Assembly (NCBI GenBank): GCA_004764695.1
Contig: SMSO01000032.1
Location: 806,001 to 870,000 of the forward strand
DNA: 64,000 nt
DNA from: Schizochytrium sp. TIO01
Lineage: Eukaryota > Protista > Bigyra: Labyrinthulomycetes
Direction of reading: 5' to 3'
The notes under the pieces were generated by a model. That model had not been told where the DNA came from and made no database searches. It saw only the letters and a list, made by a program, of their open reading frames with translations. The position numbers were made by a program, and so were the translations under genes. Below, piece by piece: positions 11,827 through 35,453 of the stretch (the first letter of the stretch is position 1; the number at the start of each line of letters is the position of its first letter).

Positions 11827-13552
11827 CGGTCAACTGCTAGGCTCCATCTACGCGGACCGATAGAAGTGCAAGTGGGATACGGGCGTTCTTTCGTTGCTGA
11901 CCACGACACCGCGAAGGCCTGCGTTGCACAAACTAAAAGTAGCAAAGGATTAACCTCAGGCCTGAAGGTTCTTTGAGCCGAAGCTTTCTTCGAGATGAAG
12001 GTTCGGCATTACACGGTTCCGAGCCAGGAATCACAATACTTGAACACGCACGCACTGGGGCAAGGCAAGCTTGTGCTGAAGGATCTCTTCGATCTCTATT
12101 CTTCAGCTCACTCACCAAAGGAGGCGCGGTCTTTGAGGCTTAAATCACCGAGGCTTTTATTTATTATTATTATTTCGTTTCTTTTTTCTCATTAATGGAC
12201 TAGGAAAGTGTTTTAGTTTTTAACATTGATCATAAAAAAAACACTGCTGCAAACGAACAGTTAGTATTTAAAAAATAAAATGAAATGAAGTAATGATTTT
12301 TTAAAATATAAAATATTTTAAGAGTATATAAATGTTTATGTGAAACTTGTACAAATTCGCATTATTTTTTTTTTTCTGAAAATAAAATAGTCTAAAAAGC
12401 AAGCTGGCGAGGCCTAATAAGGCCGATCGATGCTCATAGCAGTCCAGATTGTCTGCGAACGGCAGCGTCAGCCGGACCGCTAGCGAAGGCCTCTGATAGC
12501 TTTGATGACGATGCTCTCGACGGCAATGGGGCATGAATGAAACGCATTGAAAAACGAAGGAAAGGGAAGAGAAGGAACAAAGTTGAATTCTCAGCAGCCA
12601 GCATGGCACGCCTCGTTTCTCTCCTTTCCTTCTTTCCTCAGGTTCTCTTCACGTTCTTTCCCAGGTAAAGTGAAGTAATAGAGTGGTGATTGCTCCTGAA
12701 CGTTGAAAAGAAAAGTGAGAAGAGTCGCCCCGCCAATGCGCAAATTGCATCTTGTGCACCATAGTATAGAATCCCGCCGTGCCCCCCTCCCTCTTGCTAT
12801 CTGTCCCGCTGCCGTCAACGCCTGACACAAGCACAACGAAGAAGAAAGAAGGAGAATGGCAAGGCAGTCAAAGAAGGTGAGGGAGGGAACGAAGAAGCTT
12901 CGCCGCCCTGGGACTTTGCAAAGCCAGAGTTCCTCATGAATAATGAACGAACGCAGCATAGAAAGAACGGGCAATGCCTGTGCCGCTGGCACTTTCATCC
13001 TTCATCCTGCGGAAGTGGGGGAAGCACCCTCCTCGCTCGCTCGCTCGCTCAGAAGAACCGGCCACCAGTATTCAACGAACCGGATGGACAAGAGGCTGCC
13101 CCGAGGCTTGCTGGCGTTTCCTGAGCGGCCTCAATCGCCTCTGGCTGGGCCTGGGAGCTAGCTAGCTGCTTTCTTTGAGGGTTGGCGAGAACATCTATTT
13201 GTCAATGCTTTTGGTAAACGTTAGCTAACAGTAGCACGGTCTACCCGCCTAGTAACCTAGCTACGAGTAGCCGCTATCACCTATTGGTTACAGAAAGCAG
13301 CCTCTCGGCTGCTAATTCCGATAGGGTGGGCCGAGTGAACCAGGACCTCGGCCAGGCCGTGGAACCCGCTGAGGATGGCAAGGTGGAAAGCAGCGGCGAG
13401 GGCCCTTTCGAAGGACTCGGGACTTGGAGGCTGAAGAAGCTTGAAGTAGCAGCAGCAGCAGCAGCGTGGGAGGCGACGATGGCACCGCCAGTTTGCAGGA
13501 ATGGCGGATGGCCCTTTGGTTTAATCGACAGGCTCATGGGCGAAATTGACGC

Positions 13553-13601
13553 GAATTTTGAATTTTGAATTTTGAATTTTGAATTTTGAATTTTGAATTT
13601 T
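13553..13601. repeat. (GAATTTT)7 perfect heptamer tandem repeat
   Basis: Seven exact copies counted directly. Confidence 0.95.
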
Positions 13602-15750
13602 GAGATAAGAAGGAAGCAAGCAGCCCGCAGGTTTTCTCAGCGCTTTGCTTGCTTTTCTATCATCTAATGGCATCGTGTCGTGGAACGTCGAAGGCGATGA
13701 AGAACTGCAGAACGAGCGGAAAGGGCGTGGGCTTGGCCATATCTGGATTTCCCAGCCTCACGTCAGTCGAAGTTCAGGATGTCACGGCTGGCAAGAACTG
13801 AGATGGCCGAGCGAGTGTTAGAGAAGTGAATGGCTGGGATATGTTCAGGTTGTTGGGAATCGCTACAGGGAATCGGGGTTAGTTGGCCTGCAGCTCAGCA
13901 AGCACAAACGAAGTACTGAAGCAGGGCCTGAAGAACTTCATGCATGGATCATTAGCCGATGGATTTGAAGATTAATAAGCGTGGTGACTCCAACGAACTC
14001 GAAACGTGAAGAAGAAGCCAGTGGTGGGGCTAGCGTCTGCTTGCTTCTTTCTCTTGCTTCGAGTAGGTACGGGTTTTCGCTCATCAATGACGATGGTGGA
14101 CTTGCGAAAGTTGACTCCTTCGAATTGATTCATCGACTGATTCAAGCTGTAAATGGAACAGCCGAGACTACGAGGTAATACTGACGAAGATCTCGGGTGT
14201 GGCCTTGCTGGCAGACTTGGATTCGCTGAGGACAGAATACAATAGCTAGGAAACCTGCGGAAGCAAGCACTGCCTACGTGCATGCGTGCCTACGTGCGTG
14301 CCTGAGGGTGACCCTTATCCTTATCTATATCGTCGCTGGCTGGTTGCCGGATCGTCATCGAGTTCCCTACACAAGTTGACAAATGGAAGATCATGGACTA
14401 TTTATAGATCGAGACAAGCGCTTTGCAAAGCTTATGACTCTCGTTGCAGCGGTACATGCATTATCCAAGGAGAAGCTCGTGAACGAACCTTGGAAAATGG
14501 ATTCTCAACTCGTCGCAAGTTTGGCTCTTGGGTCAGACAGAGCCTTACCTTGCAGATGAATTACAGCAGCCAGCAAGGGAGAGGAGCTCATTGGCCCACA
14601 AGATGGGCCAGATGCTGGCGGACTCCGAGTTCTCCGAATTGCTTCGTACTTGGTAGAAACGAAACGAGATGAAATGAAACTCCTCATACCCGTAATAATT
14701 AGATAGAGAGATATCTCTATGAGTTAGACATAGTAGCCATTAGCTATGGAAGCTAGGACACAAATAGGATTTCTTAAAGTGGTCGAGAGAAGCCGTGAGA
14801 AAGACTTTGGAGAACGAGGAACGAAGAAAGAACGTGTTGGAGGCTTGATATTTTGGCGTTCTAGCAGTGAGTCACATTTAAGGAGAAGCTGTTTGGCGAA
14901 GGGCACCACTACCTGAGAGGGCTGGCCTAGGTAGTACTCGCATTTTTTTCCAATGGCTGCGATGTGAGCGAAGATATATTCTACACGGATCACAATTTGA
15001 TCAAACTTAAGTCCCTGGGGTTTGCTGCAGCACCTATCATCATGTGGAGCTTTTGCAAACGTGTTTGTATAGCTTCAAGTACTTCAAACATTGCGACAAA
15101 TATGAGGTCGAGTTCCTGAGTCGTACATTGTCTTGTGGATCCGGAAAAAATTTAATAATGTTTTTTAAAAGCCAAAGTTGGTACAGTTATCGGATTGATG
15201 ATCCTTCTCGCTCAACGCAGGCTGGAGCAAGGGTAGGGTTTTGTAGAGAGGAGTCAAGCCGTCAAAGTTCGCAATAATAGCTGCCAATCCATGCTTCTAG
15301 CCAGTGTTTTGTGTTCTCTTTATAGGCGCTACTTCCTAGTAAATTAGACAAAGCATGGTTGTGTCCGCCGTAGGGACTACCACTTCCAAAGAGAAAAATC
15401 ATTCCGTACTACCTTGAACTACTACGAACTCCAAAATTGTGTCCCGAAAGCGCCGGGGAACAAGGAAGAGTCGAATTTTCACGTGCAGGAAAGATGGAGA
15501 GTAGGTATAGGTATTGTACCTGATGCACAAACTTCAAAATCTACCAACTTAGTGGTGAGAAATAGGGCATCGGACAGAGATGATCATTTCTATAAAATAA
15601 CCAGAGCATCATGACGAGTCGATGATAGATAACCTACTGGTTTAGTTTTCTTGCTTGGTGAGCTTTCCTGGACAGGAGTGAACAAGAAAGAGGAACACAA
15701 TGTAGGAAGATTACCTTATAAATATGAGTTTTGTAAAGTCATGCGAACCA

Positions 15751-18700
15751 TTACGAAATAGACCTCGAGATATCATATTCGGCATCTCGGTGGCCATTCC
15801 GCTGGCGTAATCGCTGCATGGAGTGAACTCTGAGTTCAGCACGAACTGTGTCATATCTATTGGCAAGCTCCTCTCGTCCGTAAAAATCAGGTGTTCTTAC
15901 ATTTTGGGCTGGCCAACCAGCGATACTCTCGTCTACCCGTAAATCTGGCATTTCAAACATGTCTCTTAGCTTTTCAACATCTTCATGAGGTAACAAATGC
16001 ACAGTCTGGCCATCTTGTCCCAAAGGCAGAAGGAGATCCTGGATAGGTACACCCTCGATGTCAGCTTCTTCAGCTTCCTGGTGCTCATGTGTATAGGCCT
16101 CTATTGAATACAGGCATCGAGAATACTTAAATCGATTATCGGTATTCACGCGTTGTGCGACCATAGCCAGTTCTTTGAGATCATTCCCATATACAATATC
16201 TGCAAGAGGTTCGTGATCTAGGAAAGACTCTTCAGGATTTTGAGGCCACCACTGTTTAGCATACCCTTCACTAGAGCCAACAGCGCCGTGGTCACAGAGT
16301 CCGCTATCGCTTTCTCCCCATGCACGATAACCAATTGGAGGCGCAAACGCTTTGTGCAGATTCAGCTTTTCACCAATGACATTTTCGGAAGGATAGTAGA
16401 ACTCCTGGTCAACATCACTACGACTGACCCATGGAAACCATTTTTCGTGGGACCTGCTGCCTGCTTCTTCCTCGATTATACGAGTTACAATCACACCGTC
16501 CCCAGTTGAAACTACTTTGCAGCCTCCATCCGCAATAAAATGTATAGCTGCTTTCAAAGCACATAAGCTCCGACGCTCGCGACCGCTAAGCCTTCTAACA
16601 CTTCCCCCCCTTTGACCTGTAAAAAAATTTCGATGCCAGCCCCCTGATTCAAATGATGTCACTTGGTCCCAAATCTCTCTCCAATGCAACCTGTGCTCCG
16701 GTTTCCACTCTGTATGGTTTATAGCCATGCTTGTTCCTGGAAGTCCAAAGGTTTCCATCTCCTCAAGCTTTGAAGGCACAGACCCAGACACCTTATTAAA
16801 ATGGTTTTTTTCCCCTAAACAGTTATGCAGCTTTGCTGCGAATTTGCATAAACGGGTTCGTGTTAATGGAACTGGAATGAAGTTGCAGCATGTGCACAGC
16901 CTGATAAGCAATCTATTCCTATTTGACGTCGGGGTAAACGTTTGGACAAGAGGAAGTTTAATTGAGCCTGGATGCTGAATGCATGTACATTCACCACACT
17001 GATCTGTAAGCCACCTGCCGTGCTCGCAATGCGAGCAATCAAAACAAGGCCAGTAGTCACCATTCTCGTCAAGATTGTTTTCAGTGGCCTCCTGCGTCGC
17101 TTGTCTTCTCTTGCCATGAAGCTTGCACCAACAGTACTCACAACCCTCAAGGGGTATGTCGTGTCGACACCAGTTTTGACAGAGACTGCAACGATCGTTC
17201 TCGGTTGGGCCTTCGCCAGTATTGAACGCATGACCACAATGTGGACACTTACAATAACGGCAATGTTCTGTTCGAAGCATGTCGTGCTGGCAATAGAGAC
17301 AACTGTGGCAAGGCCATAGTGTGCCATTGTCGTCAAAATCTAAATCATCGCTCCCGGTTGCAGGAATGCGTTTTTCGTCATGATCCCAACACCAACAGAT
17401 GTCACATTCCTGAGGGTCTCTATCATGACGGCACCAGCCTTTACAAATACTGCAACGATCACTCTCAGTTGGACCCTCGTCTTCATGAAACTCATAATCA
17501 CAATGAGGACATTTGCAATAGCGGCAAGGTTCAGAACGAGGCGTGTCATGTATACAGTATTTACAATCGTGACAAGGCCATGGTGTCCCATCGTAATTGA
17601 ATTCTTCATCCTCGTGACCAGTATCTGGCACACGTATCAAGTTATGTAGTGAACACCAGCAGATTTCGCAGGAAGTACGCTCCATTCGGTGCTGACACCA
17701 ATTGGCACAAAACCTGCATCGCCCACGGGAATCTGCTGTTTCGCCCTCAAGAAAACTATGTCCACAGTATGCACATGCGCAAAGAGAGCAAAACCCCCCA
17801 GCACAAGATGGCCTCAACTCGCACAGCCGCATCTCATGTTTTATGCAATAGCAATCTTCGCAATCAAAGATTACTCGGTTTTCATGTCCGGGGCACAAAC
17901 ATGCATCTGTGCAGAGAAGGCATTTCCCATCATTTCTTTTGAGATTTCCAACCCTGCCAAGGTTCACGGCGCGGCTGTGTAGCGAGCAAAAGTGTTGGTG
18001 ACACTTTATACGTTGTGGAACTTTGTTGACAGCGTCAACTTCAGCGTTTGTATCCTGCTCAACAAGTTGAATACAATCAGGACACGGGTCTTCGCAAGCT
18101 GAGCATTTGCCACTCAACTTATATTCATTGTGGAAAAGACATTTGTGCTTGAACGAACATGTCATGCTATTTTGTTTCTTTCCAAATGGACACATTTCAC
18201 AAGGGTCGGCACAGACTGGGCAAGACAACGAATCTTGTGTAAGGTCTATGCCGCCATCCTGGTAGATGCTCATGTCCGTCTTCGTACTCCTATGTTGAGA
18301 ATCATAGCACCAGTGAATACCTAGCTCAAAGCATTCAAATCTAGTGGGGTATCTTTGCAGGGCATCTACTTGATGATATGGACAACCCCCACCTTCACAA
18401 ACCTCACACTGCCCTTGACAAGCCTCTAATTTCTCGCGCTGGTGTTCTATGCACCAATGCTTCCTACACATTGTACGCGGCAAGAGAAGGATGGGATCTT
18501 CTCCTTCTCTCTGACACTCTCTGCAAGGATCTCTGCACACAATACATTTCGAGTCCTCTTCTTTGTCTCTTCCGCCTAAGTCGCTACGTCGATGCGTTTT
18601 ACACCAATGTTGTTGACATTCTTCCTCCCAGCGTGTTTGACTTGCATTTTCAGCTTTACAGGATGCACACCCATGTTGGCAATGAATGCACTGCTTGCCA

Positions 18701-21700
18701 TAGTGAATACTACCAGTCTCTAGATAATCTGAGCATGTTTCACATGGATCGTGCGACTTAGGGTAATCGTGTTCGTTACACCAGCACAACATGCAATTTC
18801 GCTTCTTCGACTGATGCTCGCAACAACACATTGGGCAATGTCCTTCCTCATCTAGCCTTATCTGAGATCCGTGGTTCACATCGCAGTAGCATTTGCGACA
18901 TCCACGCAGAGTTTTCCCATCTTCTTCTACACCTTCTTGACGTTGCTGCATATGCACGGAACACCAACACTCGGTGCATTCAACCTTGGCTTTTTGCATA
19001 TGCTTTGGACATGGAGATGTGCAAACTAGACATGTTTTGGTTCCCCCGATCCAATGTTGGCATCCAATTTGACAAATACCTCCACAATTCAATGGATTTC
19101 GTACGTTATTATCAGCTTCTGACATATCCTCAACGTCTTCAAACCCATCTATATTTTTACTTTTTGATTGGTTGATTGAATACAAACATATCATGCAACA
19201 AGGCTTCGCATCTGGGTCATAGTCTTTCTCTCGATTGTGAGCTTCACAATAGCAACGCGAACAGTTCTTTAGCACCCAGCCACAGTCACACAGTGTACCA
19301 GGCTCGCCCTCACAACCTGGACATATCAGCTCGTAGGGGGGAACAATATCAGCATGAAATCTATGCTTCCTGCAGTAGTGTTGTAAGCACCATTTCCAAA
19401 ATCGATAGCGATGCAACCTAGCACATTGATCACAATGGCCAGGCAAATAGAACAGAAGATTCTTCCAAGTACTCCAACACACCCTCACGAGTGACAACTT
19501 TAACAGATATAACAGCAGAAGAAACCCTATAATAACTAACTCTACACCAATGATGACGAAACCTGTCAATCCAACAATGCTATAAAGTGCAGTGGCAACA
19601 AATAAACCACTAATCCCTCCGAGACATGAGATAGAAACTTCAATCAGAACACTCAACACGAACGTGCTTAAATCAAGTGCTATAATGACAAACTTCTCAA
19701 TAAACCTCATTCCCTTGTATGCTATCATTCTCAGCCGAAAGCAAGCTTCAGTTGAATCACTTCTTTGTAAAGTAGAAACTGAACTTTCGGAAGCAAAAGA
19801 GGCAGCGCTCTGACGCTCTGACTGCATGTCTTTCTTCTGGCGCTTGCATCGTAAAACACGATCTAGACAAGTTAGTTCACCAGTAGATGAATTCGTCAAC
19901 ATATCTGATTCCAAAGTATCAATAGCCATTACTGTTTGATGTTGTGTACTTCTAGCTGAGGACAGTCTGGCACAACTGCCCTTCCAAGTGCTCCGCCTAG
20001 AACTGCCAGTCTTCATGCTTCGACTTGAAGATGCAGTATCTCCTCCCTTTAGATCATTCCACCAGAGAATATTCCATAGGCCATACAAGGGTGCCTTGGA
20101 GTCGCATCTGCTGCCTCTGCTTCGACAAGTCACACTCAGATTCTCACGATCTGCTTGGGTTCTGGACTTTCCCTCCGTGCCACCTCGCAATAATTCTCGC
20201 AACACCTGAAATAGAAAAACGCTCCGACTGAATAAAGACTTTGTTAGAATCAAGAGATTGTCAAAGAGCTGTGTGTACCAAAATATCAGGTTCTTTCGGG
20301 CATTCTTCAATCCGTACTTGATAAATTCTGGTGTAAACTTCCATCGAATCGAAGACCTTGAGTAACAATAGAATAGAAACCAGGCTATCATTCCAAAAAG
20401 GAAGACAACAGGGCTCCAAAGCACCATGAAGACATATTTTGGTAACGTTGTTTTTGCTTCGCATAGCTGCATCTGCGCTGCCATGCGGCCCCACTGAGTA
20501 GTGTAGGTGTTGTTGAAGACATCATCTAGTACAGATAAAATATATGCAGGCCCCCCGTGCGCTTCATTTGATTCTTCGATGGCTCTGAGGATACTACTCA
20601 TATTTTCCCATGAAACACAAGTCCCCGCTAAAGACGCGCTACTATAACCAGTAGAACTTGAGAGACGATCGCACGCGTTTTCGATATTCTCTGGGGGATT
20701 CGAGTCCCGTTTTAACTGTATAAGAAGTACTACACCCATAGCCAAACTGTATAATACGACTACAAAAGCAAATATGGACAGACAATATGCTCGACATTCG
20801 TTTTTAATAAGCGTCCCGGCAAAGATTTTGGTTAAGCATTCTTTTTCTTCATTAGACAGCATCGGGAATTCTTCATCGTTTTCAGATTTCTCTGGAGATG
20901 GGGAATTCCGGAAGAAACCCCGCATTTGATTAAAACTCCGATAACCTTGTTTTTTCACCCTTTGTATCAAAAAAACCGTGTCGCTGCTTTCCATACTCCG
21001 CACGTGCTCCATCACAGCTAGACTTCGCTTGATAGGGATATCGTTCTTGTTATTTTTCTCCTGCTCCAGGCGTGCACTTCTTGATATCAAGCTTGAACGT
21101 GCAGAGACACTCTCTCGAAATTCCAGTTTCACCGAGTGGGAACTATCTTGCTCCACACTGTTGCGTCTGTTCTTTTCATCAGCATGTTCTAACGACTCTA
21201 GAATTCTTTTCTCCACCTCTGCCTTGAGTTTTTTTATTTTGGCTTCATTTCTGCGAAAGTGACGTTCTATCTGAGCTCTATCTTGATAAACCTGCTCTCG
21301 GTTATTTTTCACTTGGGAACAATGATTGGGTATTTCATTTTCACTGAAGATAGTTTTTTCAATGATGGCTTTAACCTTGTTCAAGTCGGATTTAGGGTCC
21401 TTTTCAGATATCCCCGCCTGTGAGTTTTTGCGGATGTAGTCCTGCAGTTTTGGATATTTTGAGCTGGAATTTACTTTGAACTCTAACAGTACACTAAATG
21501 TAGCATTGTAGACCAATTTCATATAGCGTTGGAATTGAAACTCATGGTACTTTTCGCCGAGTAGACCTAGACAGCGCAGTACTAGAAAGAAGAGAAGTAC
21601 AAAAAAAAACATAATGGTTTGAGTCTCACGATCAAAACAACCGAATCTCTGGTCAAATGCGGTCTGAAACGGTGGAAGGTTATTTCCGGTGGTATTGATG

Positions 21701-22395
21701 CCTCTAAAAACGTATGTTGCAAAGTCATGAGGTTGCAAAACTGGACTTAGCTCAAGAACCTCGTTTAACGCTGTTAATTCCCTGCATTGCTGAAGCCAGA
21801 GAAACTTGGTGCCAGAGGCCAATGCGATTGCTCCAAGAGAGGGACATGTGGTATTCTCGACTACCTGACCACTGCAGGTGCTAGAGCTCCTCATTTTTGA
21901 CCATGCCCAGCAGCAAAATCCGAAATACAGTGAGCATAAACTGATGGAGAAAATAATCGATATCTTCTGTCGGGGCTTCTCAAATTCCCAATTCCCCATA
22001 TTCAAATATTTAATACTTTGCGCAGAATAAGTTGTAACATTCCAATCTCGAGAGCCATTGTCATATGTAGATACATCTCCAAGATGGTTTGACATTTCAT
22101 TTTCAGAGTGGCAATTTAAGAATCGTGGCTGCTGCGAGTCGCCGATGAAGTTAGACCATGAAGGGCGCCTACTTGTATAGCGGTTGGGCATACATGTATT
22201 CTCATTATTGGTCTGCGAGTCTTCTTCATCCATTTCGTATGGATATTGAGAATGGACGAAAGTTGAAACTTCTACAGTACTATGGGTGATGGGTGGTTCA
22301 TCATCAGCGCTATCGAATGTCTCCATCTGGTTGCTTGAATGAAACCCAACCTGATCATACCTGGGTGCAGCGCTCCCTTTGCTCTTTCGCCTCAT
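15751..22395 (-). CDS. Giant multipass membrane protein with Cys/His-rich putative zinc-binding repeat array (paralogue A), about 2214 aa, family unrecognised
   Basis: Uninterrupted 6.6-kb ORF. The first ATG is at 22395 (MRRKSKG); the track's 22476 start is a GTG. Four hydrophobic segments plus a long hydrophobic hairpin, then many C-x2-[CH]-[WYF]-C-x2-H units. Colinear similarity to 25145..31493. Confidence 0.88.
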   Translation of the reverse strand: MRRKSKGSAAPRYDQVGFHSSNQMETFDSADDEPPITHSTVEVSTFVHSQYPYEMDEEDSQTNNENTCMPNRYTSRRPSWSNFIGDSQQPRFLNCHSENEMSNHLGDVSTYDNGSRDWNVTTYSAQSIKYLNMGNWEFEKPRQKISIIFSISLCSLYFGFCCWAWSKMRSSSTCSGQVVENTTCPSLGAIALASGTKFLWLQQCRELTALNEVLELSPVLQPHDFATYVFRGINTTGNNLPPFQTAFDQRFGCFDRETQTIMFFFVLLFFLVLRCLGLLGEKYHEFQFQRYMKLVYNATFSVLLEFKVNSSSKYPKLQDYIRKNSQAGISEKDPKSDLNKVKAIIEKTIFSENEIPNHCSQVKNNREQVYQDRAQIERHFRRNEAKIKKLKAEVEKRILESLEHADEKNRRNSVEQDSSHSVKLEFRESVSARSSLISRSARLEQEKNNKNDIPIKRSLAVMEHVRSMESSDTVFLIQRVKKQGYRSFNQMRGFFRNSPSPEKSENDEEFPMLSNEEKECLTKIFAGTLIKNECRAYCLSIFAFVVVLYSLAMGVVLLIQLKRDSNPPENIENACDRLSSSTGYSSASLAGTCVSWENMSSILRAIEESNEAHGGPAYILSVLDDVFNNTYTTQWGRMAAQMQLCEAKTTLPKYVFMVLWSPVVFLFGMIAWFLFYCYSRSSIRWKFTPEFIKYGLKNARKNLIFWYTQLFDNLLILTKSLFSRSVFLFQVLRELLRGGTEGKSRTQADRENLSVTCRSRGSRCDSKAPLYGLWNILWWNDLKGGDTASSSRSMKTGSSRRSTWKGSCARLSSARSTQHQTVMAIDTLESDMLTNSSTGELTCLDRVLRCKRQKKDMQSERQSAASFASESSVSTLQRSDSTEACFRLRMIAYKGMRFIEKFVIIALDLSTFVLSVLIEVSISCLGGISGLFVATALYSIVGLTGFVIIGVELVIIGFLLLLYLLKLSLVRVCWSTWKNLLFYLPGHCDQCARLHRYRFWKWCLQHYCRKHRFHADIVPPYELICPGCEGEPGTLCDCGWVLKNCSRCYCEAHNREKDYDPDAKPCCMICLYSINQSKSKNIDGFEDVEDMSEADNNVRNPLNCGGICQIGCQHWIGGTKTCLVCTSPCPKHMQKAKVECTECWCSVHMQQRQEGVEEDGKTLRGCRKCYCDVNHGSQIRLDEEGHCPMCCCEHQSKKRNCMLCWCNEHDYPKSHDPCETCSDYLETGSIHYGKQCIHCQHGCASCKAENASQTRWEEECQQHWCKTHRRSDLGGRDKEEDSKCIVCRDPCRECQREGEDPILLLPRTMCRKHWCIEHQREKLEACQGQCEVCEGGGCPYHQVDALQRYPTRFECFELGIHWCYDSQHRSTKTDMSIYQDGGIDLTQDSLSCPVCADPCEMCPFGKKQNSMTCSFKHKCLFHNEYKLSGKCSACEDPCPDCIQLVEQDTNAEVDAVNKVPQRIKCHQHFCSLHSRAVNLGRVGNLKRNDGKCLLCTDACLCPGHENRVIFDCEDCYCIKHEMRLCELRPSCAGGFCSLCACAYCGHSFLEGETADSRGRCRFCANWCQHRMERTSCEICWCSLHNLIRVPDTGHEDEEFNYDGTPWPCHDCKYCIHDTPRSEPCRYCKCPHCDYEFHEDEGPTESDRCSICKGWCRHDRDPQECDICWCWDHDEKRIPATGSDDLDFDDNGTLWPCHSCLYCQHDMLRTEHCRYCKCPHCGHAFNTGEGPTENDRCSLCQNWCRHDIPLEGCEYCWCKLHGKRRQATQEATENNLDENGDYWPCFDCSHCEHGRWLTDQCGECTCIQHPGSIKLPLVQTFTPTSNRNRLLIRLCTCCNFIPVPLTRTRLCKFAAKLHNCLGEKNHFNKVSGSVPSKLEEMETFGLPGTSMAINHTEWKPEHRLHWREIWDQVTSFESGGWHRNFFTGQRGGSVRRLSGRERRSLCALKAAIHFIADGGCKVVSTGDGVIVTRIIEEEAGSRSHEKWFPWVSRSDVDQEFYYPSENVIGEKLNLHKAFAPPIGYRAWGESDSGLCDHGAVGSSEGYAKQWWPQNPEESFLDHEPLADIVYGNDLKELAMVAQRVNTDNRFKYSRCLYSIEAYTHEHQEAEEADIEGVPIQDLLLPLGQDGQTVHLLPHEDVEKLRDMFEMPDLRVDESIAGWPAQNVRTPDFYGREELANRYDTVRAELRVHSMQRLRQRNGHRDAEYDISRSIS
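16981..17775 (-). repeat. Three tandem 88-aa (264-nt) Cys/His repeats inside paralogue A
   Basis: Units start at 17775 (CAYCGHSF), 17511 (CPHCDYEF) and 17247 (CPHCGHAF). All share RCxxCxxWCxH...CxxCWCxxH...WPCxxCxxCxH. Confidence 0.9.
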
Positions 22396-25144
22396 TTTTA
22401 TACTGTTTAAAGCACAGGAACAAGAGTTGAAGGTGCTTGGTAGACCAAGAAGAAAATATCTTTCCACACGATACACAACAGGTAGACCAGCAGCCTTGAC
22501 ACTGCACTGCTAGTGAAGAGTTTTGTTGATCTATATTGTGTGAATATCAGATATACACAAGCTCGCAAGGCTCACCCACGCAATCTGTGTTAATATTTGT
22601 CTCTGGATCGTATCGGCACTAGACTGACTCAGTTATAATGAAAACGTATTTCTCTCAAAACGAGTTTGAACGTTTGCTTTTGCATTCAGTCGCTTCTTGA
22701 CAAAACTAGTACCTAATTCCTTTTAATACGCCTTTGCTATGTTGTGCCGTGTCAGTCTTGTTGGTGTTCTACTCACATAACTGGCATGGCTTCAATGTAT
22801 ATACAAGTTACCTCTAAAATCATGTTTTCTAGTAGTATAATTTCAAAGCCATTCTGGTAGCCCCCGTGCACTTGCTACTTCGCCCATAATGTAATATGGC
22901 CTTCCCACTTCCCTTCGCAAATGCAATGCAAATTTTGTATACTGAAGTAGATCGCACAGCGGTGCCGTGGTGTCATGATACATAGTATCGAACCAGCTAA
23001 CCCGTTGAATCTGAATAGTTTCCAAACTGTTCCTCTGGTTCTCCGTCTAGAGCTCAACCTCGAGTCGCCTTCGTGCTACTTGGCGGACGGCTCAGCCTGT
23101 CGGTATTCCACTCACACACTTCATCCGGGATACCCATCACCAATGTCACGGTGCAGTAAGATTTACCATTCATCATTTGTAGAAGTTACCTACCTACCTA
23201 CTACTTACTTACTTACTTACTTACTTACTTTCTCCCAAATGTATAGAACTCATACTATGCTTTACAATGAACATGCTGGAGTCTCGCGGTGCATAAAGCT
23301 TTCAATCAGCGGTGACCAAAGTATTTGCTCCTCACAGCTGTGCATAAGATCTTTTTGTAACTTGGAAGTAGGTATGTAGTACCCACTACCAAAAATAAAG
23401 TCCATTCAAGTAAATTGTCAAAGCAGTTTTAGAGCTGAGCACCTCGTGCGGCAATAGCGAGTCTCCCCAGCTCCTTACCAAGTTCAGAAAATTTCAAGTT
23501 CTAAACTTTTTTTATCAAATTTGTTCGCTTTGCGGAGCGGAAGGCGTCACATACTCAGAGTAGGCTGGGAAACAAAATAAAAGCAGACGTGGGGCCACCT
23601 TTGATAGAACTGGGGCCTGGAGGAGATGTCATTCCCATATTGAGTCTGAGTTTCTTCTTAGTGGGTATCAGATGGCCACGCAAAAGGCCGAGGGAAGATC
23701 CGTCATTTTGAAAGTTCTCTAGACCATTTACATCTTGAGTACCCACTAACCTACTCACCTATTCTACTTTTAACAAAGGGCACCAGAAGCTTCATTTGCA
23801 GCCTTAGCTATGTTTCGGCTGCAGGATTCGAGGTACGTAAACATCTGTTTAAAAGAAAAAGAATTTAGATGCTGCACGCGCTGATTTTGGCTCACAAAAA
23901 GTACTAGTACGCAGAGATATTGCATGATTGGTAGGGGGGGGGGGGTTATCTTTTTATTTGGGTGAACGCTGAAGTCAAAGCCAAAGTATCAAGGAGCTCG
24001 ACCGGTCTTCACCATAGAGTGAGTTTGAAGGCACTCAGCAATTACTAAGTAAGCTATCAGGAGCCATGGCTTCTTTCCCGAGCTGTCTGCAGTATCCTTC
24101 ACAAGATGAATGTTCAAAAATAAGCTCTTGAAATTGAGGTGAACACTCAAGTGTAAGCTTTAGCTTGTATCCTGCGGCCTGTACGGCAGCTCGACTGGCA
24201 CGAAGAATCAAAACGACATTAGATTGCGTTGCAATCATGCTATACATAATACGAGAGCAACTGCGGAGGGCCCTTTTAAAGTGGAAAGAAGCTTGCAGCG
24301 CTGGAAGAAAACAAAGAACAGACTTATGGTTCATGATGGAAAGAATATATGAAATTTGAGCCATACACATTTTATGGTGTCCTGGGGTGTCCTGTTGTTC
24401 AGGCTGCTGGAAGTTTGCTGAGATCGTGGATGGTAGAAGTGTGCACAGAGCACGTGCACGCTTGAATGCGCAAAAGCCTAATACAAACTCTGATGCATGA
24501 AATGTAACACGTTTCAAATCAACCTTGCAAGCAAATGAAATTGTCTTCGCATGCTGGGTCAGTGGGTGGGTCAGAGCTAGAAACATATTGCAGTTTATCT
24601 GTCCAAAAAGAAGAAAGATCTTCATCACTTTACTATTCAATGTACAAATGTATAGAACGTCAAAGTTAGTGACTTGGAGTATTAATTCTTGATGACCTGC
24701 AAAAGCTAGTGGTTTGAATCACCTACTAGGTACTACCAGAGCTGGTCGGGCCGGCCCATTCAGAGTTTTCTGTTTTCCCTCATGATTGCCGAGCTAACTA
24801 CAAAGCACTCCGACTACCCAGTTTAAGCGAGGTTAGAGTTCCTCCCCCCAGGTGCTTCTATTTACTTCAATTTTTTAGTTTTACCTCCATGGCTTGTTTC
24901 CAGACCTCTTTCTTTGTCAACCAGATACGGAAGGTCCGGAATTACGGATAAATAGCTATCTCTAAAACCATTTTGCCACTTTGCCTCAAGCTAGCTCTTT
25001 TCCATAATCAAATCTACATAATTCTCGTGCTCAAGCCAACTACCCGTCTACGGCTCTGTAAGAATTGACAGTTGTAGCTTTGGCCAGTACGAACTGAGCT
25101 CGCATTTCTTAAGATTTTTACGGCAGTTAATTATCCTGAAAGGC

Positions 25145-28100
25145 ATGCGCCGTCGAGGTTTGTACAGAAAGTATGAAGATCGCTATGAAGATCGCGCCGG
25201 TGATATACCTTTGGCAAGGTCATCCAGTTCGCACAGCTCATGTGATTACAATCAACGCTTTCTCACGTCTGAACCACGGAACTCAGGAATGAATCACAAC
25301 TCTACGACGGTTGATAATATAAATTCACATCACGAAACGAAATCGAAACTGTATAGCAGAATTTCTAATTATTCTGGAGTACAAACAGATCATATAAACT
25401 GTTGTTGTTGTGACATCTGTAGAGCTAGTGAACAATTACACGATGAGGAAAGTAAACAGCAAGAGAAACATACAGAAAGTCATGGTAGACGTTGCCACTC
25501 AATAACATGTCTTATGGGTAGGGTTATGAGTTGGGTAGGGTTCTTTATTGGATTTGTATCCACGATTATATTCCTCTCCTTTTGGGTCATGGTATTGGAG
25601 TTCGCAACTCTTCCCTGCGAACCTACTCAAGAAACGAACCCAGATTGCTCGAATTTGCAAGAACTGGCTGCCAGTATAAATGTAACAAGTTTCCTGTGGC
25701 TTGGAAAATGCATTGACACAAGCACTACTCCGTTGGAGACAATTTTTGGCCAAAGTGCCTCAAGTTCACCTTTGGAGTTCTCAGTACAAGTCATTCGAAG
25801 CGCTTACGAATCTAACTTTTCAACCCGTGATGCTCTGGGAATTCATTCGCAACAAAGCGTGTGTTACAAAGGTCCAACAAAATCTTTCTATATTATCATC
25901 AATGTTCTATATGTGGTCCTCCTCCTAGTAGCAAAATTTTGGGGCGACGAAAACAACAAGACAATGCAAGAGAAATTCAGCAATCCGATCAAAGACTTGA
26001 CACTCTATAGTATTTGGAGCGATACCATGGAAGAAAGTTGCAGAAGGTCTGGATTGTCAGGTTCAAGAGGCGAAGGAACCCAAAAGGGGCACGGCCTCAC
26101 CAAATCCAGGGTCTCCTCTTTACGACAATTGATTAAACGTCGATATGAACATGGGCCTAACATGAGAGCTGCGAAAAAAAAAGGGGAGAATCCTAAAAAA
26201 GAAATGGAAGATATACTGGAGGAATATCATGACACAGTTCCTGAAACCGAAGGAAAAGAAAAGTTTATATTATCAAAGAGCAAAGAGAATCATTGACGAT
26301 CTGAAGAATTCAGATGGAGATAGCTTGCGACGTAGAGACCCGGCTTCGAGGCGCTTCCAGGATTTGGAAAAAAATCTGTACGAATCCCAGGAAAAGTTGC
26401 GGGTACATTGGGAAACTTGCCTCCAAAGTGGTAGGGATTTAGAACGAGCGTCACAAGATGCTGAGCATCTGGAAGTCGAGGTACAGAAAGCGAAGAGCGT
26501 CGTAGACGCTTATTTTGATGAACATAGGGAAAAGCAAGGCGAACCTCGCCATTTTTCTAGTTTGGAAGTTGTCGAAAAAATTCTTGAGTTACTTGCTTCT
26601 TCAGAAACTTATATACGAATCCCATTTCCCTGTAGGAGACTGGGTGGCACAGCCGATAAAACGAACAAAATGGAAAAAGAAGAAACCCCTGAAGCTTACG
26701 CTGCTAAAATTCTTCGTGATTGGGAATGGTTTGCCTGGTTTTTTTTCGTGCTTGCATGCCTGTCTACAATCTTTTCTTCTATCTGTTCGATACTTTCGTT
26801 GGCCTACCCTAGCATCTCCTCTACATTGAGCGAGGCTATTGATAGTACTGATTGTCCATCTTTGTCAGATATTCTCCCAGCAGTCTCTGTTGCTTTTGAT
26901 GGAAGTTGCAAAAGTTCTGATTGGATTCGCAACTTTTTGTTGCTCTATGAAAATTCTACAGATATTCTTAGCCAAGTACCTAGCATTGTTGACTTCATAG
27001 ATGGAGTATCAGAAAGCGATGGAAGTCTCAATTCTATTCATGATCTGCGTCGCTTTGTAGACCAGACGAAACTTTGTGTGCAACGTCCAGGTTTGCTTGG
27101 ATTATTCGCTGTCAGATTCTCGCTCAACTGGTGTTCATTTTTATCAATGACTGGTTTTTATACGTTTTCTCGAAAGTCAATTAGATGTAAGCTGATCAAG
27201 AGTAACTCAATATATCAGGGCGTGTCAAAGTTTCTTCGAGATGCAAAACTTCGATTGCTGGGCTTCTTTAAATTTATTCGGGTATCTTTAGAGAAAATTA
27301 TAGCTCGTATTTTTTTACCTCTTTCCAATGTGTGGATGGAATACGAGTGGTGGGTAGAGTCGCGCAACCCTTTAAAATTTGTATCAGCACGAGTGTTACT
27401 CCAAGCTCTTGCTTTTACCATTTTGCTTATAGTAGTCACAGGTGCGGCGCTTTCGGCAAACGCCTTGTATGATACCTTTACAATTGATCAGACCTCACAA
27501 TTAGAAGTTCTGTTAACGATCACCCCAACGTCTAGCCCAACACCTTCCTCAATACCTGTTACACCGACGGCCCCAACAGTGTCTATCCCTACTGCACCAA
27601 CTACATTGTTATCAACGCCTAGTCCGACTGTTATGCCTAGTCCTGGTACTTTACAACCGAGCTCGAATCTTACATCTTCAGGCGTTGCATTTTTAAGTGG
27701 ATGGACTTCCTTGAGGATTACACTTACAATCTTAGGAGCAGTCATTCTAGGTGTAATTCTCGCCCTGCCATTTCTTTTGATATGTATGAAGAACAAGTTT
27801 GATGGTGAGCTGGGCGAGCTTGTGACTGGTACTGGTAATTATGGAGATTCTCAAAACACCACGCTTCAGGGCCATAAAGGGGCAGTCAGGAAGGAAAGAT
27901 TGAGCTTGTCAGAATCGAGTTTGACAAATTCGCTTGGTAATGAATATGGAAGAAAGGGCGGGGGTCAACCAAACTCTACTTTACGTCCTCCAAAGAATAA
28001 TAACTCGAGATCTCGGTATGAAGATACAAAGGATACGACACAGGAAACTTCCTTGTCTCCTCTCTCCTCGAAAGATTATACATTACCAAAGCAATATACT

Positions 28101-31100
28101 GTCGATACAAGGTCATCGTTGAGCCAAAGTAGCCTTTCCACTTTGTCTTTAAGCTCCGTGGGGTCCAAGGGCTTGCGAAGCCACGGCTGTAAGGCTTCTA
28201 TTATGTCTGTTTTTTATCAACTTTGTTCATGTTTTTCAAAGGAAATAAAAATCAACGAGCAGCCAGACTCGATAGAGTCAAGCTCTCAAAGACGAGTATC
28301 TTCAACAAAGACAAGTGCGTCTGTGCCTTGTCAGTCATGTATCACTATGACTTTCACAGTCCTTAATACTGCCATCTACTATGTGCTTCTTTCGCCCTTT
28401 GCACTTATTGTTGTCATCACAGAAGGTTTAATTCTTTTGGGAATTTGCATAATGGCAGTAGTTATTGTGCTTGCAATTTTTCTTTTTTGCCTGCCCATCT
28501 TACTGATTGGCCTAATCTTGTACATATTGTTTAGGGTCTTACGAAAGACGCTCCTTCTCCTTAGGAGGGGGATCAAATGGATATGGTGTACAATCATTTT
28601 ACCCTGCATTCCTCTCCGCTGTCTCTCGTGCGCAAGAGAAAAATCGATCTTTATTTATAAGCACCAATGTACAGAGCATTTTTGCAAGAAACATCACTGT
28701 TTTATGCGAACAGGCGAGACATGTGCAGGATGCGAAGATCCTGATCTGCAACTCTGTGATTGTTTCCCGGCCCAAATTCTGGAGACCTGTCCTCGATGCT
28801 TTTGCCATATCCATCATAAGATTAAAATACAACAACCTGGAACTCTAGCAAGCATCAGGAGCATGTGTTCTCCAATGAAGAAGATTTGTTCAATTTGCGA
28901 AGATCCATGCCCTCAGCACCCTGATACTATGCCCAAAAGACAATGTCCCGATTGCTGGTGCCTTCGTCACGATAGACCCGTAGAGCAGCACCAGCTCGCA
29001 GCAGGGTTTGGTCGTGGCTGCGACAAATGTTTTTGCGCAAAGCACCAATACGTGCTACTTAATTTCTCAGAGGGTCGTAAAGATGGAGTTTGCCCAGAGT
29101 GCAATTGCGAACATTTCAAAGCACGCCAGGATTGTGAACTTTGCTGGTGCAAAACACACCTATGCAAGAAAGATAAAATCGCATGTTCAAAATACAGTAG
29201 AAACCTACAAAAAACTTCCAGCAGTCGACCTTCTGGCGGAATTCCTGACTTCACGTTTAGTTGCAAACATTGTGACAATCCTTGCGAGGTTTGTGCGATA
29301 TTCAAAGAAGGAGCAGCTCTTCGTTGGGAAGAAGAGTGTGCCGAACACTGGTGCCCGATACATCGCCGCTCAGACCCTGATGCCGATAACCCAGCCGGGA
29401 AATGTATCGTCTGTCGCGATCCATGTGAGCTTTGCAAGAAGGAGCGCGTTTCTGCCCAGCGACTACCTGCACGAGAAGAGTGTTCGCATTGGTGTAACCT
29501 ACACCAGCGCATAGCACCCTATAAAGATCGTAATTGCTTAATTTGTCGGAAGTATGGATGCCCTTATCGTCATACGGGGGATCATCGCCAGCCGACACGG
29601 CTTGAGTGCAAAGAGCACTGGTGCGCAGATTTCCAACATGCAAAGAGTTACAAAGAGAGAGAAGATATGGATTTCATGAAAGTCAACGAATACATCCTTG
29701 TTGATCTCTTCAAGGCACGCCACTGCCCAGTATGTGCGGACCCATGTGAGAAGTGCCCACTCGGCTCTACGTGTCCTCGAACTAAATGCAACAGACATTA
29801 TTGCCAACCACATGACCGAAGTAAGAGGCTAGGAAAAGATGGTCATTGGGTTTGCAATGCGTGTGATGACCCTTGTAGGGAATGCTTGCTGGAAAACGGG
29901 GGTGTTGACGAAGGAACATGGGCTCCTAAAAGGGATGAATGCGACAAGCACTTCTGCAAATTCCATAAACGACCAGTAAACAAGGGACGACCTTATTTAG
30001 AAGTGAGATGTGATGGTAAATGTCTCATCTGTACTGACAGGTGCGCATGTCATCCGTATCGAGCGCTACAAGAATGTGAAGATTGTTTTTGTGGGAAACA
30101 CCCAGAGCATCCTCATTTATACCTCTGCAGTAGATTTTTGGCATGCGCAAAAGGCTCGTGCTTCCTCTGTACGTGCCAGTTTTGTCATCAAGACTTCGTA
30201 GAGGGCGATTTTATGAATGAGAATGGGCGGTGTCAGCGGTGCCAAGACTGGTGCAAGCATCAAATTTTACTTCAAGATTGCAATGCATGCTACTGCAACT
30301 ACCACAAGGAGGAACGTCTCCATACTGGATCCGAAGGTATTCAGCCTTGTCCTAAGTGTGAGGAGTGCATCAGCCATCACATTATGCCTGCCGAAGAATG
30401 CAAGGTTTGTTTTTGCTTAAGGCACAATACCCACAAAATTCGTCTTCAGGGTATACGAGGATCCAACTCTACTGTCTGTATTGTGTGTACACAAATACAC
30501 GCAGTTCTCACCAAGAAAAGGTTCTGCAAATTTGCTGCTAAATTATTCAACTGCCTTGGTATGAAGGGGCTGCTTGATGACTCTGACCTTGGAAGGATGC
30601 ATTCCATCAGTTCTCCACAAAATAGTGCATTTAGAAATGACCAATCACGGTCTCATGTTAGACAAACTTGGAGTGATGATATGAAGCTCGGTTGGACTGA
30701 GTTGTGGTCAGAAGTTGGTCGTGTAGATCAGACAGATTTAAGTATGTCGGCAGTCTCGAGTGGGATGTCGCAGCGTACGATCGTTATTGATGGCCTTAGA
30801 CAGCGTCGAATTATATGCGCAATCAGCGGTGCAATTCATGCTATTGAAGACATCTGGACGCAGATGTTTCAAGAAAATGTTGTTCTATTTGGAATGGAAA
30901 ATACGGAAGAAACCTGGCTGAGGCTTCGTACAACTCAAGACCGCCCGAGTCGTGAACACGGTGGCTTAAACTACGTCAAGTGGTTTCCATGGCGAGTTTT
31001 AGGTCGTATCGGCTTCATGGGGTTTAATGGTCCTAGGATCAGGCCCATAGAATTTAAATATAGCAGATTTGGCAACGGCGAAGATTGCTTTGACTTGTCA

Positions 31101-31493
31101 GACTTAGATTGCACGATTTGGTGGAGAGAAGAGGATGGCGACACAGTTGCTTATCATGACCCAATGCTCGACATACTTCGAGATGAAGACTTGGAAGAGC
31201 TTGCGTTGATTGCTACGAAGTTTGAAAGGGATAGCTCGAGGAGACAATACCAAGACATGATGTTGTATCGGCAAGACAACATGAGGCTAGCTCTTCTTGA
31301 TCATGGTGATCAATTTCTCACCAAGTTTCGTGCTAGATCGGGGTTGGCTCCCGATCATACCCCACAATACGAAAGAAGTCAAATTGAAAGCTTGAATGCC
31401 AGGGTAGATGCAAATGCGGCGTACGAAAGATATAAATGGAGTGATCAGCAATACATCACAAATTTTGCGGATCACACGCATAGGTTCTCGTAG
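25145..31493 (+). CDS. Giant multipass membrane protein with Cys/His-rich array (paralogue B), split by a +1 frameshift in 26166..26296; about 2115 aa if joined
   Basis: ORF 25145..26296 matches the N-terminus of paralogue A (CSNLQELAA..FLWLGKC vs CPSLGAIAL..FLWLQQC). ORF 26229..31493 matches the rest (RWEEECxxHWCxxHRRSD, KCIVCRDPC, CKFAAKLxNCLG, KWFPW). Both frames are open over 26166..26296. Could be an intact gene with an assembly error, a pseudogene or a recoded gene. Confidence 0.8.
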
Positions 31494-34400
31494 TTTTAAG
31501 TATATGATTTCACTCCGGCTAGAAAGTCTTGTGCGATCCTCATTCTTAATTCATATTATATAAACTAGTTAAAAATTATCTCTCTTACATCAACTGTTTG
31601 ATAGTCACGCAATAAGAAAACTATTGTTGGATGCTTGCTAGTCGTGCGAACTTTTCGGTAAGGCAACATTTGAAATGACGAACTATTTTATATGGGTAGA
31701 ACGGTGGTGACTTTAGCTCGGCTGTGATGTTTGCCTTTAGCAAAACGCTTGATCACCGCAAGGTTATTCTCTCTCCTATTCTAATGAGAGCTTGGTACTT
31801 GTTCATCAAGAGCTAACTGATGCAGAAGTTTTGATAATACCTATCTTTAAAAAAATAAGAGATTAAAACACATAAAGGAGTAAGATTTAGGGATTTGGCA
31901 AATAACGCTATCTAAAGTCAGCTCCCTATGTTTTAGCTCTCGCAACTTGCAAGATATTACTAAAATTCTTTTACTTGTATACAACTCAATGCCTACTCTG
32001 ACTGCTGGCAATCAATAGATATAGTCGTCCTGCCAACTTTGCTTGCCTGCTCGCTCTTTTGCAGGTCAACTGCGTTGCAGATGCTAAAAGCGCACTACTC
32101 AAATACTCAGGTTGGTGCACACCCTCTTGAGCTGTACCTGATTCAATTTGTAAGTTTCAATATACTTATGGTGTACGACAAGTTGATCCTTAGATTTTTC
32201 ATCTTCATACTACTAGTACTAGCTCTAAGATGCTGCTAAATACAACAAGATCAGACCTCAATTGACCTGGTCAATTTATTAATAATCAAAACCATCACCG
32301 TTCTCATCGTGACCTTGAGCTAGCTAGGTACAAGGTGCTCATCTAAATCGAGGTGTACAAAAGGATCCAACTTCAGGTATTGTTTTAGCCTTACTTTATC
32401 CCAGCATTTTTTTGAGGAGTTGCCTCTGACAAGTGAGTATAGTCCAGCTTGAAATCGATTTAGACGTGAATAAGCTGCTGAGATGCACCCGCCCGAGACT
32501 CATGCAACAATAAAGAAGCGAGGAGAATAGAAGTAACGTTCTTTTCAATTTTGAGGTTATTGTAGCCTTCAATCCACCTCTCAAGCCACTGCGATCGGCC
32601 AGAGCCCATGTATCCAATTCAAGATCCCTGCGTATGCAAAAGAACATCTGCAGATTTGTAACTCGTCATTTTAAGCCACTAAGTAAGCGCGGCTATTAAA
32701 AGCTGTTATACTCTGACTAACTACAAATATGGTCACCGCAGCAATACCTATTCCTTTTAAACAACTTAGAGTGACACATGAAGAGTAACATCCAATCTAT
32801 CTGGCTTCAACTCCTCCTCCTTTCGCGAGTCAGAATCGATCCCTTTACCTAGGTTAAAAATCACATTACTAATAGCCACCTTCTCCTCTTCTTTTGCCAT
32901 CTTGGTCCTTCAGACGGCAAGTTTTCAGATTTATGAGCCCTGAATTTTCACCGTACCATTAGTAAGTAGGTACCTAGAAGACATGCTTTAGTAGGTATGT
33001 AATTGATTAGCTATGTCAAAAATAAAGAATTGGCTCTTCTTTTCTCCCCATTGATGCTTTGTGCACGCGCTGATACTTTTGTTCTTAGCAAAGTAGTAGG
33101 TAAGTGACTAAGTATTTTAGGTAGAGAAAATGAAAGTAAAGAGGCAGGCAGCGCGTGCAGCAGGAGACTCGGACTTCGTTTGACTCGTACATTAACTTCA
33201 AGTTGAGCGATAGGTACTGACAGCAACTCGTGCTCGAAGATCATCCGAGCAGTAGCTTACAGGCAGTAAGGAAAGGACAAATTAAAGACTGCGGGGCTTG
33301 TGCGTCGCCGCCAGTTGTCACTGGATGTGGCAAAGGCTGTTGGTCGGTGGGTGGGGCGGGAGGGCTGCCGGAAGAAGAGGGCGCGTGTCAGCTTGTTCTC
33401 AGTGCTCCATCTAGCCACTGGCTGCTGCTTCATAGTTATCTTAGCCTGACTTCTGACTCTCTACTTTGGAAAGGCGAGTGCTTGAGTTGATTGCAATCGA
33501 CGCATTGCAAGGTCAATAAAGTCTCGAGCTACTCTGCTTGAGTGGTGTCCTGAGACCCTTGATGGTGCATATCTCATTTTTTTGGAGATTGCCAAAAGAT
33601 TGTTGAAGCGGTTTACTTTGTCGGGCTCCTCTCTCATTTCAAGTTGATGGTCGCTCTTTAAGTTAGGGCGGTCCATACTCTGAGTTGCGCTGTTTGGTTC
33701 CGAGGTATTTGTCTTTTCCGTGTGTGTATAGGTAGGTAGGTAGGTACCTACACCCGTGGTCACACAGCAAAAGGTCTCTTCTTCAGGTTGTGACCAGAGC
33801 ATTTCTTGGAGAAGCTAGTCCAACATCATTCTGAATTTGTGAGTCACATTCTGAGAAGTTTTTGCTCTTTTTTTTTTTCAAAGTTATAAAGAAAGCACTC
33901 AATTATAGTCAAGGAAAGCTGAGATATGCTTTCTCTTGAAGTACAGCAATTCGATTGCTCTCAGTAACATCTTCATCACTGGCTTGAGAGCTGCAGAACC
34001 CACCGATTAAAAAAGTCCTCCACGAAGCTGCGCCAGCGTCTACTGGCTCGCCAGTAACATGGGCGTTGCAAGCGGCTCTTACCTGGCAGGCTTGCGTGCT
34101 TCTTCAATTCCCCACTGCTCCATTACTGTCTTTCGACGATATAAGAAGGACATTGCTAGAGATCCGCTAGCACAGAATCTACCAGAAACCAAATCTATCA
34201 AGGTAAAAGCTTAAATTCGTCCTGATCTCTGAGTCACCTTCTCGCCAAGTGACAGGGTGACAGGAAGCCACATTCTTACTCCGCTGGTGCGTCCCCACTC
34301 CTCCGTGGTAACGAATCGAATCACAGTGATACTACTGCATTAGTTTACAGATTGAGTAAATGAGGATCTCCTCTCTCTCCACGCACTCGCGCACACTCCC

Positions 34401-35453
34401 TTACACTTACACCCTCTCCCATTCCCCCTCTCATTCTACTACTGCTTACCCACCGCTAGACTCACATTACGGAGATCAATGCATAGCTACATAGCACGAG
34501 GTACTACTAGAGATCCTATGTTACCTATCTCTTTGTTCTCATTTTGACTTCAATCAATACTTTGTGCCTAAGCTAGCAAGGAAACTTGAAGAAAGAACCA
34601 CGTACATAAAAGCCTTCAATTCAAGTGCTTTCGAGCACTCTCTAGACTAGCCACTGCCGCCTATCGCTATGTAGGCACTAGCCACCTTCATTAGTTTAAG
34701 CAAGCGCCACAACGAAGAGCAAAGTTTTTTTTTGGAGAACACTATTAGGAGCTTTTTCACATTCGCTTTAAGCGCCACAAGCGAGCGTGGTTCTGCACTC
34801 CGGACACTTCGTCAGCTGGGTGCTTTTCGCCGCGAGCGAATAGGTCCAGCTATTGAAAAGATCTGCCAAAGTACTTTGTCATGCTGGCTGTGCTGGGCGT
34901 GCTGGTTATGTTCTTTGAGAAGTTGTAGGGTCCCAGATTTTCAAGTTCGTGACTCTCTAAATTTGAACTTTTACTTTTTAACTTTAAAATATTTAAAAAA
35001 GTAAAAACTTCTCTCGTATGATCAATAAATAAATGATGTGTACCTCTAACTAGGAGTAGGAAAGGTGGTAGTGCCACCGAAGTTTAGCTTTGGCACTTCT
35101 CTATTTGTTCCTACAAGTACTCACTCACTCAATCGCTCTTGTAACACAGTAGGCGCAAGTAGAGGTAACAGTAGCACTCGAATGGGGATTTAATCCTGAC
35201 GATCATTCTTTACGCACCTGCTCCCGTGTCAATTCATAGCTGCATCAAAGTTCGCTCTCCAGGTGCTTGCTTCGAGCTAGCTCGGACCTGCTGTGTCGAG
35301 CTAGCTTTGGTACCGAGCAGCCTGATCTGCAAGGCTGACTTGCTAGTCTTTTTGGGCTAGTACTGGTTGCTTTCGGGCCGGGTTACTGGGAGTTTTGGTC
35401 TTTTGTTCATAATAGTAGGAGGGGTAACACATCGACAAAAGCGACTCGGCACC

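Follow-up and report, generated by a model that had tools for sequence, protein, structure and literature searches.

The DnaJ/Hsp40 cysteine-rich domain, in which four CxxCxGxG motifs bind two zinc ions within a nested hairpin, and the cross-brace modules (RING, PHD, B-box and ZZ), which set eight Cys/His ligands in four pairs over 25-45 residues, are the closest described counterparts of the repeat reported here. As regards the membrane anchor, the MARCH and RNF-type E3 ligases, the DHHC palmitoyltransferases and LITAF join a multi-pass or hairpin anchor to a cytosolic zinc-binding Cys/His domain, the tetraspan families (connexin, innexin/pannexin, CALHM, claudin, tetraspanin) have four transmembrane (TM) segments and two outward loops with conserved Cys. 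As regards gene order, the head-to-head nucleotide-binding leucine-rich repeat (NLR) gene pairs of plants set two related genes in divergent orientation. We analysed a stretch of 64,000 nucleotides from Schizochytrium sp. TIO01 (contig SMSO01000032.1, positions 806,001 to 870,000; hereafter the window), in which two large divergent genes, A and B, encode multi-pass membrane proteins with a long Cys/His array. We propose that A and B are receptor-like membrane scaffolds with a zinc-array tail rather than channels, a reading to which we give a probability of about 0.55, a figure that reflects mostly the structural description and less the function.

The two proteins are paralogues. BLASTP aligned them with 32% identity over the Cys/His array (E value 2e-93), a second alignment reached the C-terminal motif (E 3e-39), and the N-terminal parts aligned weakly (E 0.002). 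Within the array, 85 of the 94 Cys columns (90%) are identical in A and B, against 29% of the columns outside Cys and His, which indicates that the ligands are strongly constrained while the linkers drift; the four conserved blocks quoted in the original prediction were all recovered in both proteins. A HMMER scan of 1.84 billion cluster representatives with residues 1019-2214 of A retrieved four proteins only, A and B included. The other two are GBG33683.1, a hypothetical protein of 1020 amino acids (aa) from Hondaea fermentalgiana (P0003), and a 1643-aa protein from a JGI contig (P0004). Common to the four are a TM/Cys loop/TM module, the eight-ligand units described below and the motif R-F-C-K-F-A-A-K-L-x-N, with 60-70 invariant columns. 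Word-indexed protein searches with whole A, with residues 1000-1560 of P0004 and with residues 590-1020 of P0003 returned the query itself and nothing else, no relatives were found in metagenome, viral or bacterial/archaeal contigs, and in the 64-Mb genome the whole protein, a profile of the membrane module and a profile of the unit matched these two genes alone. So far the family has been seen in thraustochytrid-type data only (this species group, H. fermentalgiana and the JGI contig), and neither the Hondaea accession nor a family of this kind was found mentioned in the literature.

The array, 660-880 residues long, is built from a unit of the form C-x2-C-x2-4-C-x1-2-[C/H], a loop of 6-30 residues and C-x2-[C/H]-aromatic-C-x2-H, which packs eight ligands into as few as 25 residues and also holds conserved aromatic and Asp-Pro positions. 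A regular expression recovered 26 full units from the four proteins, with the fourth and sixth ligands being (H,C) in 16, (C,H) in nine, (C,C) in one and (H,H) in none; visual inspection also shows (C,C) in the unit that comes first in A and in that of B. Counted over whole proteins, C-x2-[C/H] knuckles number 59 in A, 48 in B, 51 in P0004 and 11 in P0003. Residues 1560-1825 of A (window 16957-17733) comprise three tandem, diverged modules of 88 aa with two compact units each, which are single in B, P0003 and P0004. Tandem Repeats Finder reported no DNA-level repeat there, which indicates that these modules of A are old.

We infer that each unit of the repeat binds about two zinc ions; if one zinc is counted for every two knuckles, the large members would have about 24-30 sites. 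Zinc is favoured over disulfides by the fixed His positions together with the predicted cytosolic location of the array. The reciprocal Cys/His swap between the fourth and sixth ligands hints that these two share one metal site, and hence at a nested two-zinc hairpin such as that of the DnaJ cysteine-rich domain. Like the latter, each unit presents four close two-ligand knuckles, and the swap fits a putative pairing in which the inner knuckles (2+3) would hold one zinc and the outer knuckles (1+4) the other; few independent events stand behind the swap, and the model of a unit has a predicted local distance difference test score (pLDDT) of 62.6. Unlike the DnaJ domain, the units lack CxxCxGxG (no G-x-G follows the knuckles), use His ligands, carry an aromatic residue in the second cluster, occur by the dozen in tandem and have no Pfam match. 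The cross-brace modules share the eight ligands in four pairs over a similar length, but the spacings found here fit none of their consensus patterns, no hidden Markov model (HMM) matched at E up to 10 beyond noise and there was no fold match. A ferredoxin-type Fe-S motif was considered and rejected, given the wrong spacing and the presence of His ligands.

Two further functions of such an array were weighed. It could be a buffer or sensor for zinc, copper or cadmium, that is, a membrane-anchored metallothionein-like sink or a zinc-sensing regulator, as the 131-173 Cys and His of the array and the marine host might suggest; we consider this very improbable, since the strict spacing and the conserved aromatic and Asp-Pro positions are typical of structural zinc modules and not of metallothionein-like clusters, and Pfam detected no transporter domain. 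Equally hard to favour is a membrane-tethered regulator whose array binds nucleic acid or acts as a RING-like ubiquitin-ligase module, perhaps once a cut close to the hairpin has freed it from the membrane. Nucleic acids and E2 enzymes are frequent partners of zinc modules in tandem, and the order of the ligands, in four pairs, is broadly similar to that of RING or PHD, but no RING, PHD or B-box HMM was matched, the best result being a single unit at E 0.053 to zf-RING_6. Signs of nuclear targeting were neither looked for nor noticed.

The original prediction had recognised no family, and the searches agree with it, as Pfam, PDB sequences, the ESM Atlas and fold libraries yielded no match for any module. 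Pfam returned nothing for the whole proteins at E up to 1, and for 20 single units at E up to 10 it gave only the zf-RING_6 hit, which lies far below threshold. PDB sequence and profile searches stayed within noise; a profile of four TM-loop-TM modules collected short TM noise only, and the N-terminal 984 aa had 0 matches. In the ESM Atlas a piece of the array had no usable match, and the scores of the C-terminal domain, at most 0.76, were at noise level. AlphaFold models, proposed as a check, were of low quality: that of the whole Hondaea protein, built from 4 alignment rows, reached a pLDDT of 32 and was unusable, and the membrane module reached about 37-42. A single 35-aa unit modelled with 20 paralogous rows attained the value given above, its second half (about 75) forming a short hairpin, and had no Foldseek or VIA-align match, as expected at such length. 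The proteins accordingly have no detectable relationship to known families, from which newness of their folds cannot be claimed: the word "new" is used in the sense that neither a relative nor a known fold is detectable, and implies no new mechanism. Orphan families without assigned function are common in protist genomes.

Hydropathy and flanking charge give the order TM-loop-TM, charged helical loop, TM-loop-TM, hydrophobic hairpin of 70-81 residues, Cys/His array and C-terminal domain, so that the shared module order proposed earlier holds for both A and B, with an additional TM/linker/TM insertion in B. Protein A starts with a region of ~143 residues and no signal peptide, followed by TM1 (144-165), TM2 (257-282), a charged helical loop of ~250 residues, TM3 (533-563), TM4 (651-679) and a Ser/Arg-rich linker. 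Three Cys (C-x2-L ... G-x-C ... C) are invariant in all seven TM-loop-TM modules of the four family members, and the family motif R-F-C-K-F-A-A-K-L-x-N-C is invariant, basic and amphipathic. The Hondaea protein has a single TM-loop-TM module, and thus two TM segments, and no hairpin. Clusters of Lys and Arg precede TM1 and follow TM2 and TM4 in each of the four proteins. From the positive-inside rule in the four proteins, the two-TM Hondaea protein and the Pro/Thr/Ser-rich linker between the extra TM pair of B, the N-terminus, the helical loop and everything beyond the hairpin are predicted to be cytosolic, and the two Cys loops to be outside or lumenal.

The reverse topology would place the array outside the cell as a disulfide-bonded surface coat or adhesion structure, like the variant-specific surface proteins (VSPs) of Giardia, ciliate surface antigens or furin-like repeats. 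Closely packed CxxC repeats typify the surface antigens of protists, the length of the hairpin would allow three spans, and the N-terminal differences between strains (see below) are mostly non-synonymous. We nevertheless hold this to be quite improbable: the positions of His are fixed and its exchange with Cys is reciprocal, a signal peptide is absent, the charge distribution and the two-TM Hondaea protein point to a cytosolic array, conservation is highest in the array, which is not the most variable part, and Pfam gave no VSP or furin-like match even at E 10.

Four predicted TM segments and two outward loops with conserved Cys recall the tetraspan channels in outline. In these proteins, however, the loops have ~90 residues, the two halves are internal duplicates, one member consists of a single half, and the size is 5-10 times larger than in the tetraspan families; no Pfam similarity and no PDB sequence or profile similarity was found to large-pore or tetraspan channels (connexin, pannexin/innexin, CALHM, LRRC8). 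The membrane-anchored zinc-finger proteins differ in turn, since one defined zinc domain there stands against a string of about 13 units here, and no DHHC, RING-CH or LITAF signature or HMM match was obtained. A LITAF/SIMPLE-like domain found no Pfam match, and a CxxC before the hairpin occurs in B only and is not conserved.

In the receptor-like scaffold that we favour, the outer loops, which vary, would be in contact with the environment, the cytosolic array, stapled by zinc, would form a long docking platform together with the C-terminal domain, and the basic helix would hold the array at the membrane or bind a regulator; we do not think that A and B form a pore. Several points weigh against this proposal. 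"Scaffold" is a default reading for a repeat array. The topology is drawn from hydropathy and charge, and a hairpin of this length could cross the membrane three times, leaving the array outside. Since the two types of unit are old lineages, no more than one or two evolutionary events may lie behind the ligand swap, and units with (C,C) occur. The AlphaFold models (pLDDT 32 for the whole Hondaea protein, 62.6 for the unit, the latter with no fold match) are of no use in deciding. Finally, B is frameshifted in this assembly and may be non-functional in this strain.

The original prediction had proposed a candidate receptor/channel system in which A and B are co-regulated subunits of one heteromeric membrane sensor, or else a sensor/helper pair. 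On this view a bidirectional promoter would serve both genes. The paralogues and their spacer are indeed kept together, nearly unchanged, in many near-identical strains of the Aurantiochytrium group (runs from 12 studies); P0001, the counterpart of A, and P0002, that of B, probably lie on one 18478-bp Logan contig, contigs of one RNA assembly cover both genes, and the outline resemblance to tetraspan channels would suit a channel. We nonetheless regard a heteromer as unlikely. One homologue is on record for each other source, and conserved divergent pairing, which the original prediction had put forward as a check, was not seen outside the species group, where unannotated partners are possible. 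The Hondaea member has a single TM-loop-TM module, B is frameshifted here, no channel or receptor family was matched, and a simple inverted duplication would equally give the divergent orientation. In the spacer no open reading frame (ORF) was convincing, and neither a symmetric repeat nor a promoter element common to the two genes was found. The analogy to plant NLR pairs concerned the orientation of two related genes and nothing else; Pfam found no NB-ARC domain, leucine-rich repeat or integrated decoy in A or B.

A quartet tree of the four proteins (773 fully occupied columns) grouped A with the Hondaea protein and B with the JGI protein (support 93/93), and forcing A and B together cost 5.7 log-likelihood units (p-AU, from the approximately unbiased test, 0.053). 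With its long branches, the tree is suggestive of an old duplication that predates these lineages, which counts against the heteromer in that the partners elsewhere would have been lost or are unannotated. The two genes are most simply explained by an old inverted duplication.

To compare strains, public assemblies were aligned over window 21500-27400. In the N-terminal parts of both genes that this region covers, the differences in run X16 comprise 16 non-synonymous and 3 synonymous changes, and those in X2, a deep DNA assembly, 4 and 0; the numbers are small, and errors may contribute to the shallow X16 contigs. The pattern hints at neutral or diversifying change rather than strong purifying selection. 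Of the old duplication under purifying selection that had been predicted, the age and the constraint on the Cys/His ligands are therefore upheld, and the constraint may not extend to the N-terminal parts, where changes are mostly non-synonymous. A more far-reaching version of the scaffold reading would make the pair a new class of surface receptor, in which fast-evolving disulfide-bonded loops recognise a virus, mate or prey surface, a cytosolic rod with a new two-zinc fold signals or assembles a platform, and A and B form a heteromer; we consider this speculative and distinctly unlikely.

Should the repeat prove to be a new zinc-binding module, the catalogue of zinc fingers would gain a class, with a natural case in which a single membrane-anchored chain carries about 24-30 metal sites. 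Truly fast evolution of the outer loops would make the pair a candidate recognition system among marine decomposers, a group with almost no surface receptors known to us.

The coordinates of both genes are given in Table 1. The description of two intronless genes that diverge across a 2.75-kb spacer and both begin with MRR is correct as to orientation, spacer (2749 bp), MRR starts and intronless coding regions; it has to be amended in that gene A has an intron in its 5' untranslated region (5'UTR) and B is not a single ORF here. The listed ORF of gene A opens with a GTG at 22476, and its first in-frame ATG, at 22395, is confirmed as the start codon by an in-frame stop in exon 2. The splice joint of the 5'UTR intron appears in a contig of RNA assembly X15, which shows that X15 represents real spliced RNA and that gene A is transcribed. 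X15 contigs also cover positions 25138-27000 of gene B, so that both genes are represented in one spliced RNA assembly.

Protein A is identical to P0001 save for F265S. The base behind this difference (window 21602, in TM2) is A in the present assembly, giving Phe265, and G, giving Ser, in X2, X16, X17 and P0001; it is a second variant private to this assembly, next to the frameshift in B. A short upstream ATG lies at the end of exon 1 of gene A, and run X16 lacks 10 bases at window 22475, in the 5'UTR ~80 nt upstream of the start codon. Within the spacer, a (TTAC)n/(TACC)n microsatellite (23186-23230) marks the point where short-read assemblies break, and positions 23596-24686 are covered by low-depth contigs of RNA run X15, and also of X16 and X17, which could stem from a 5'UTR of B that is long or spliced, from a transcript so far unannotated or from carried-over DNA.

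The interruption of gene B comes from an extra G that lies outside any homopolymer run. The base is missing from X2, where the word depth is ~388, and from a 1052-nt contig of X15, and the intact 2115-aa protein is present in the protein library as P0002; the G is thus either peculiar to the strain that was assembled or a mistake of the assembly. It also creates an ATG at 26229, so that the downstream 1754-aa ORF starts with Met where intact B has His-Thr.

Table 1. Features of the divergent gene pair, in window coordinates
Feature	Position	Strand	Remarks
Gene A, coding region	15751..22395	minus	2214 aa + stop; starts MRRKSK at first in-frame ATG 22395
A C-terminal domain	15754..16809	minus	~350 aa; mostly helical (low-confidence model), weakly conserved; KWFPW, HDP.ADIL
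A conserved basic amphipathic motif IPVPLTRTRLCKFAAKLHNCLG	16810..16878	minus	most invariant stretch of the family
A Cys/His array	16816..19446	minus	residues 984-1860; 121 Cys, 52 His; about 13 full eight-ligand units
A hydrophobic hairpin	19468..19710	minus	81 residues, 896-976
A module 2 (TM / Cys loop / TM)	20326..20820	minus	residues 526-690; internal duplicate of module 1
A module 1 (TM / ~90-aa loop with 4 Cys and NxT sequons / TM)	21520..21990	minus	residues 136-292; loop predicted outside or lumenal
Gene A 5'UTR intron	22531..22776	minus	246 nt, GTGAGT..ATAG (GT..AG); joint 22530->22777 in X15 RNA contig
Gene A exon 1	22777 to roughly 22900-23075	minus	upstream of 5'UTR intron
Spacer between start codons	22396..25144	.	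2749 bp; holds A 5'UTR exon and intron, microsatellite, probably B 5'UTR
Gene B	25145..31493	plus	starts ATG, MRRRGL; intact form 2115 aa; here two ORFs, 25145-26296 and 26229-31493
B module 1 (TM / Cys loop / TM)	25490..25969	plus	
Extra G	26231	plus	shifts reading frame of gene B; frame change at 26229-26231
B module 2 (TM / Cys loop / TM)	26706..27215	plus	
B-specific Pro/Thr/Ser-rich linker between two extra TM segments	27477..27692	plus	predicted outside; insertion not in A
B hydrophobic hairpin	28353..28562	plus	70 residues
B Cys/His array	28608..30590	plus	90 Cys, 41 His; ends in KRFCKFAAKLFNCLG
B C-terminal domain	30591..31490	plus	

The regions that flank the pair, 4215-15750 and 31494-35366, are without an ORF of at least 200 aa and may hold intron-containing genes or non-coding DNA. 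Elsewhere in the window the neighbours include protein kinases, an importin, a thioredoxin-domain protein and a Brr2/SNRNP200 helicase. The ORF of the latter (47623-54291) was considered as a third paralogue of A and B and rejected on this identification; that a spliceosomal helicase is encoded by one uninterrupted ORF of 2222 aa shows the genome to be intron-poor. Two adjoining minus-strand ORFs at 59422-61812 correspond to the halves of an AMP-binding enzyme and probably belong to a single gene that an intron or a frameshift divides.

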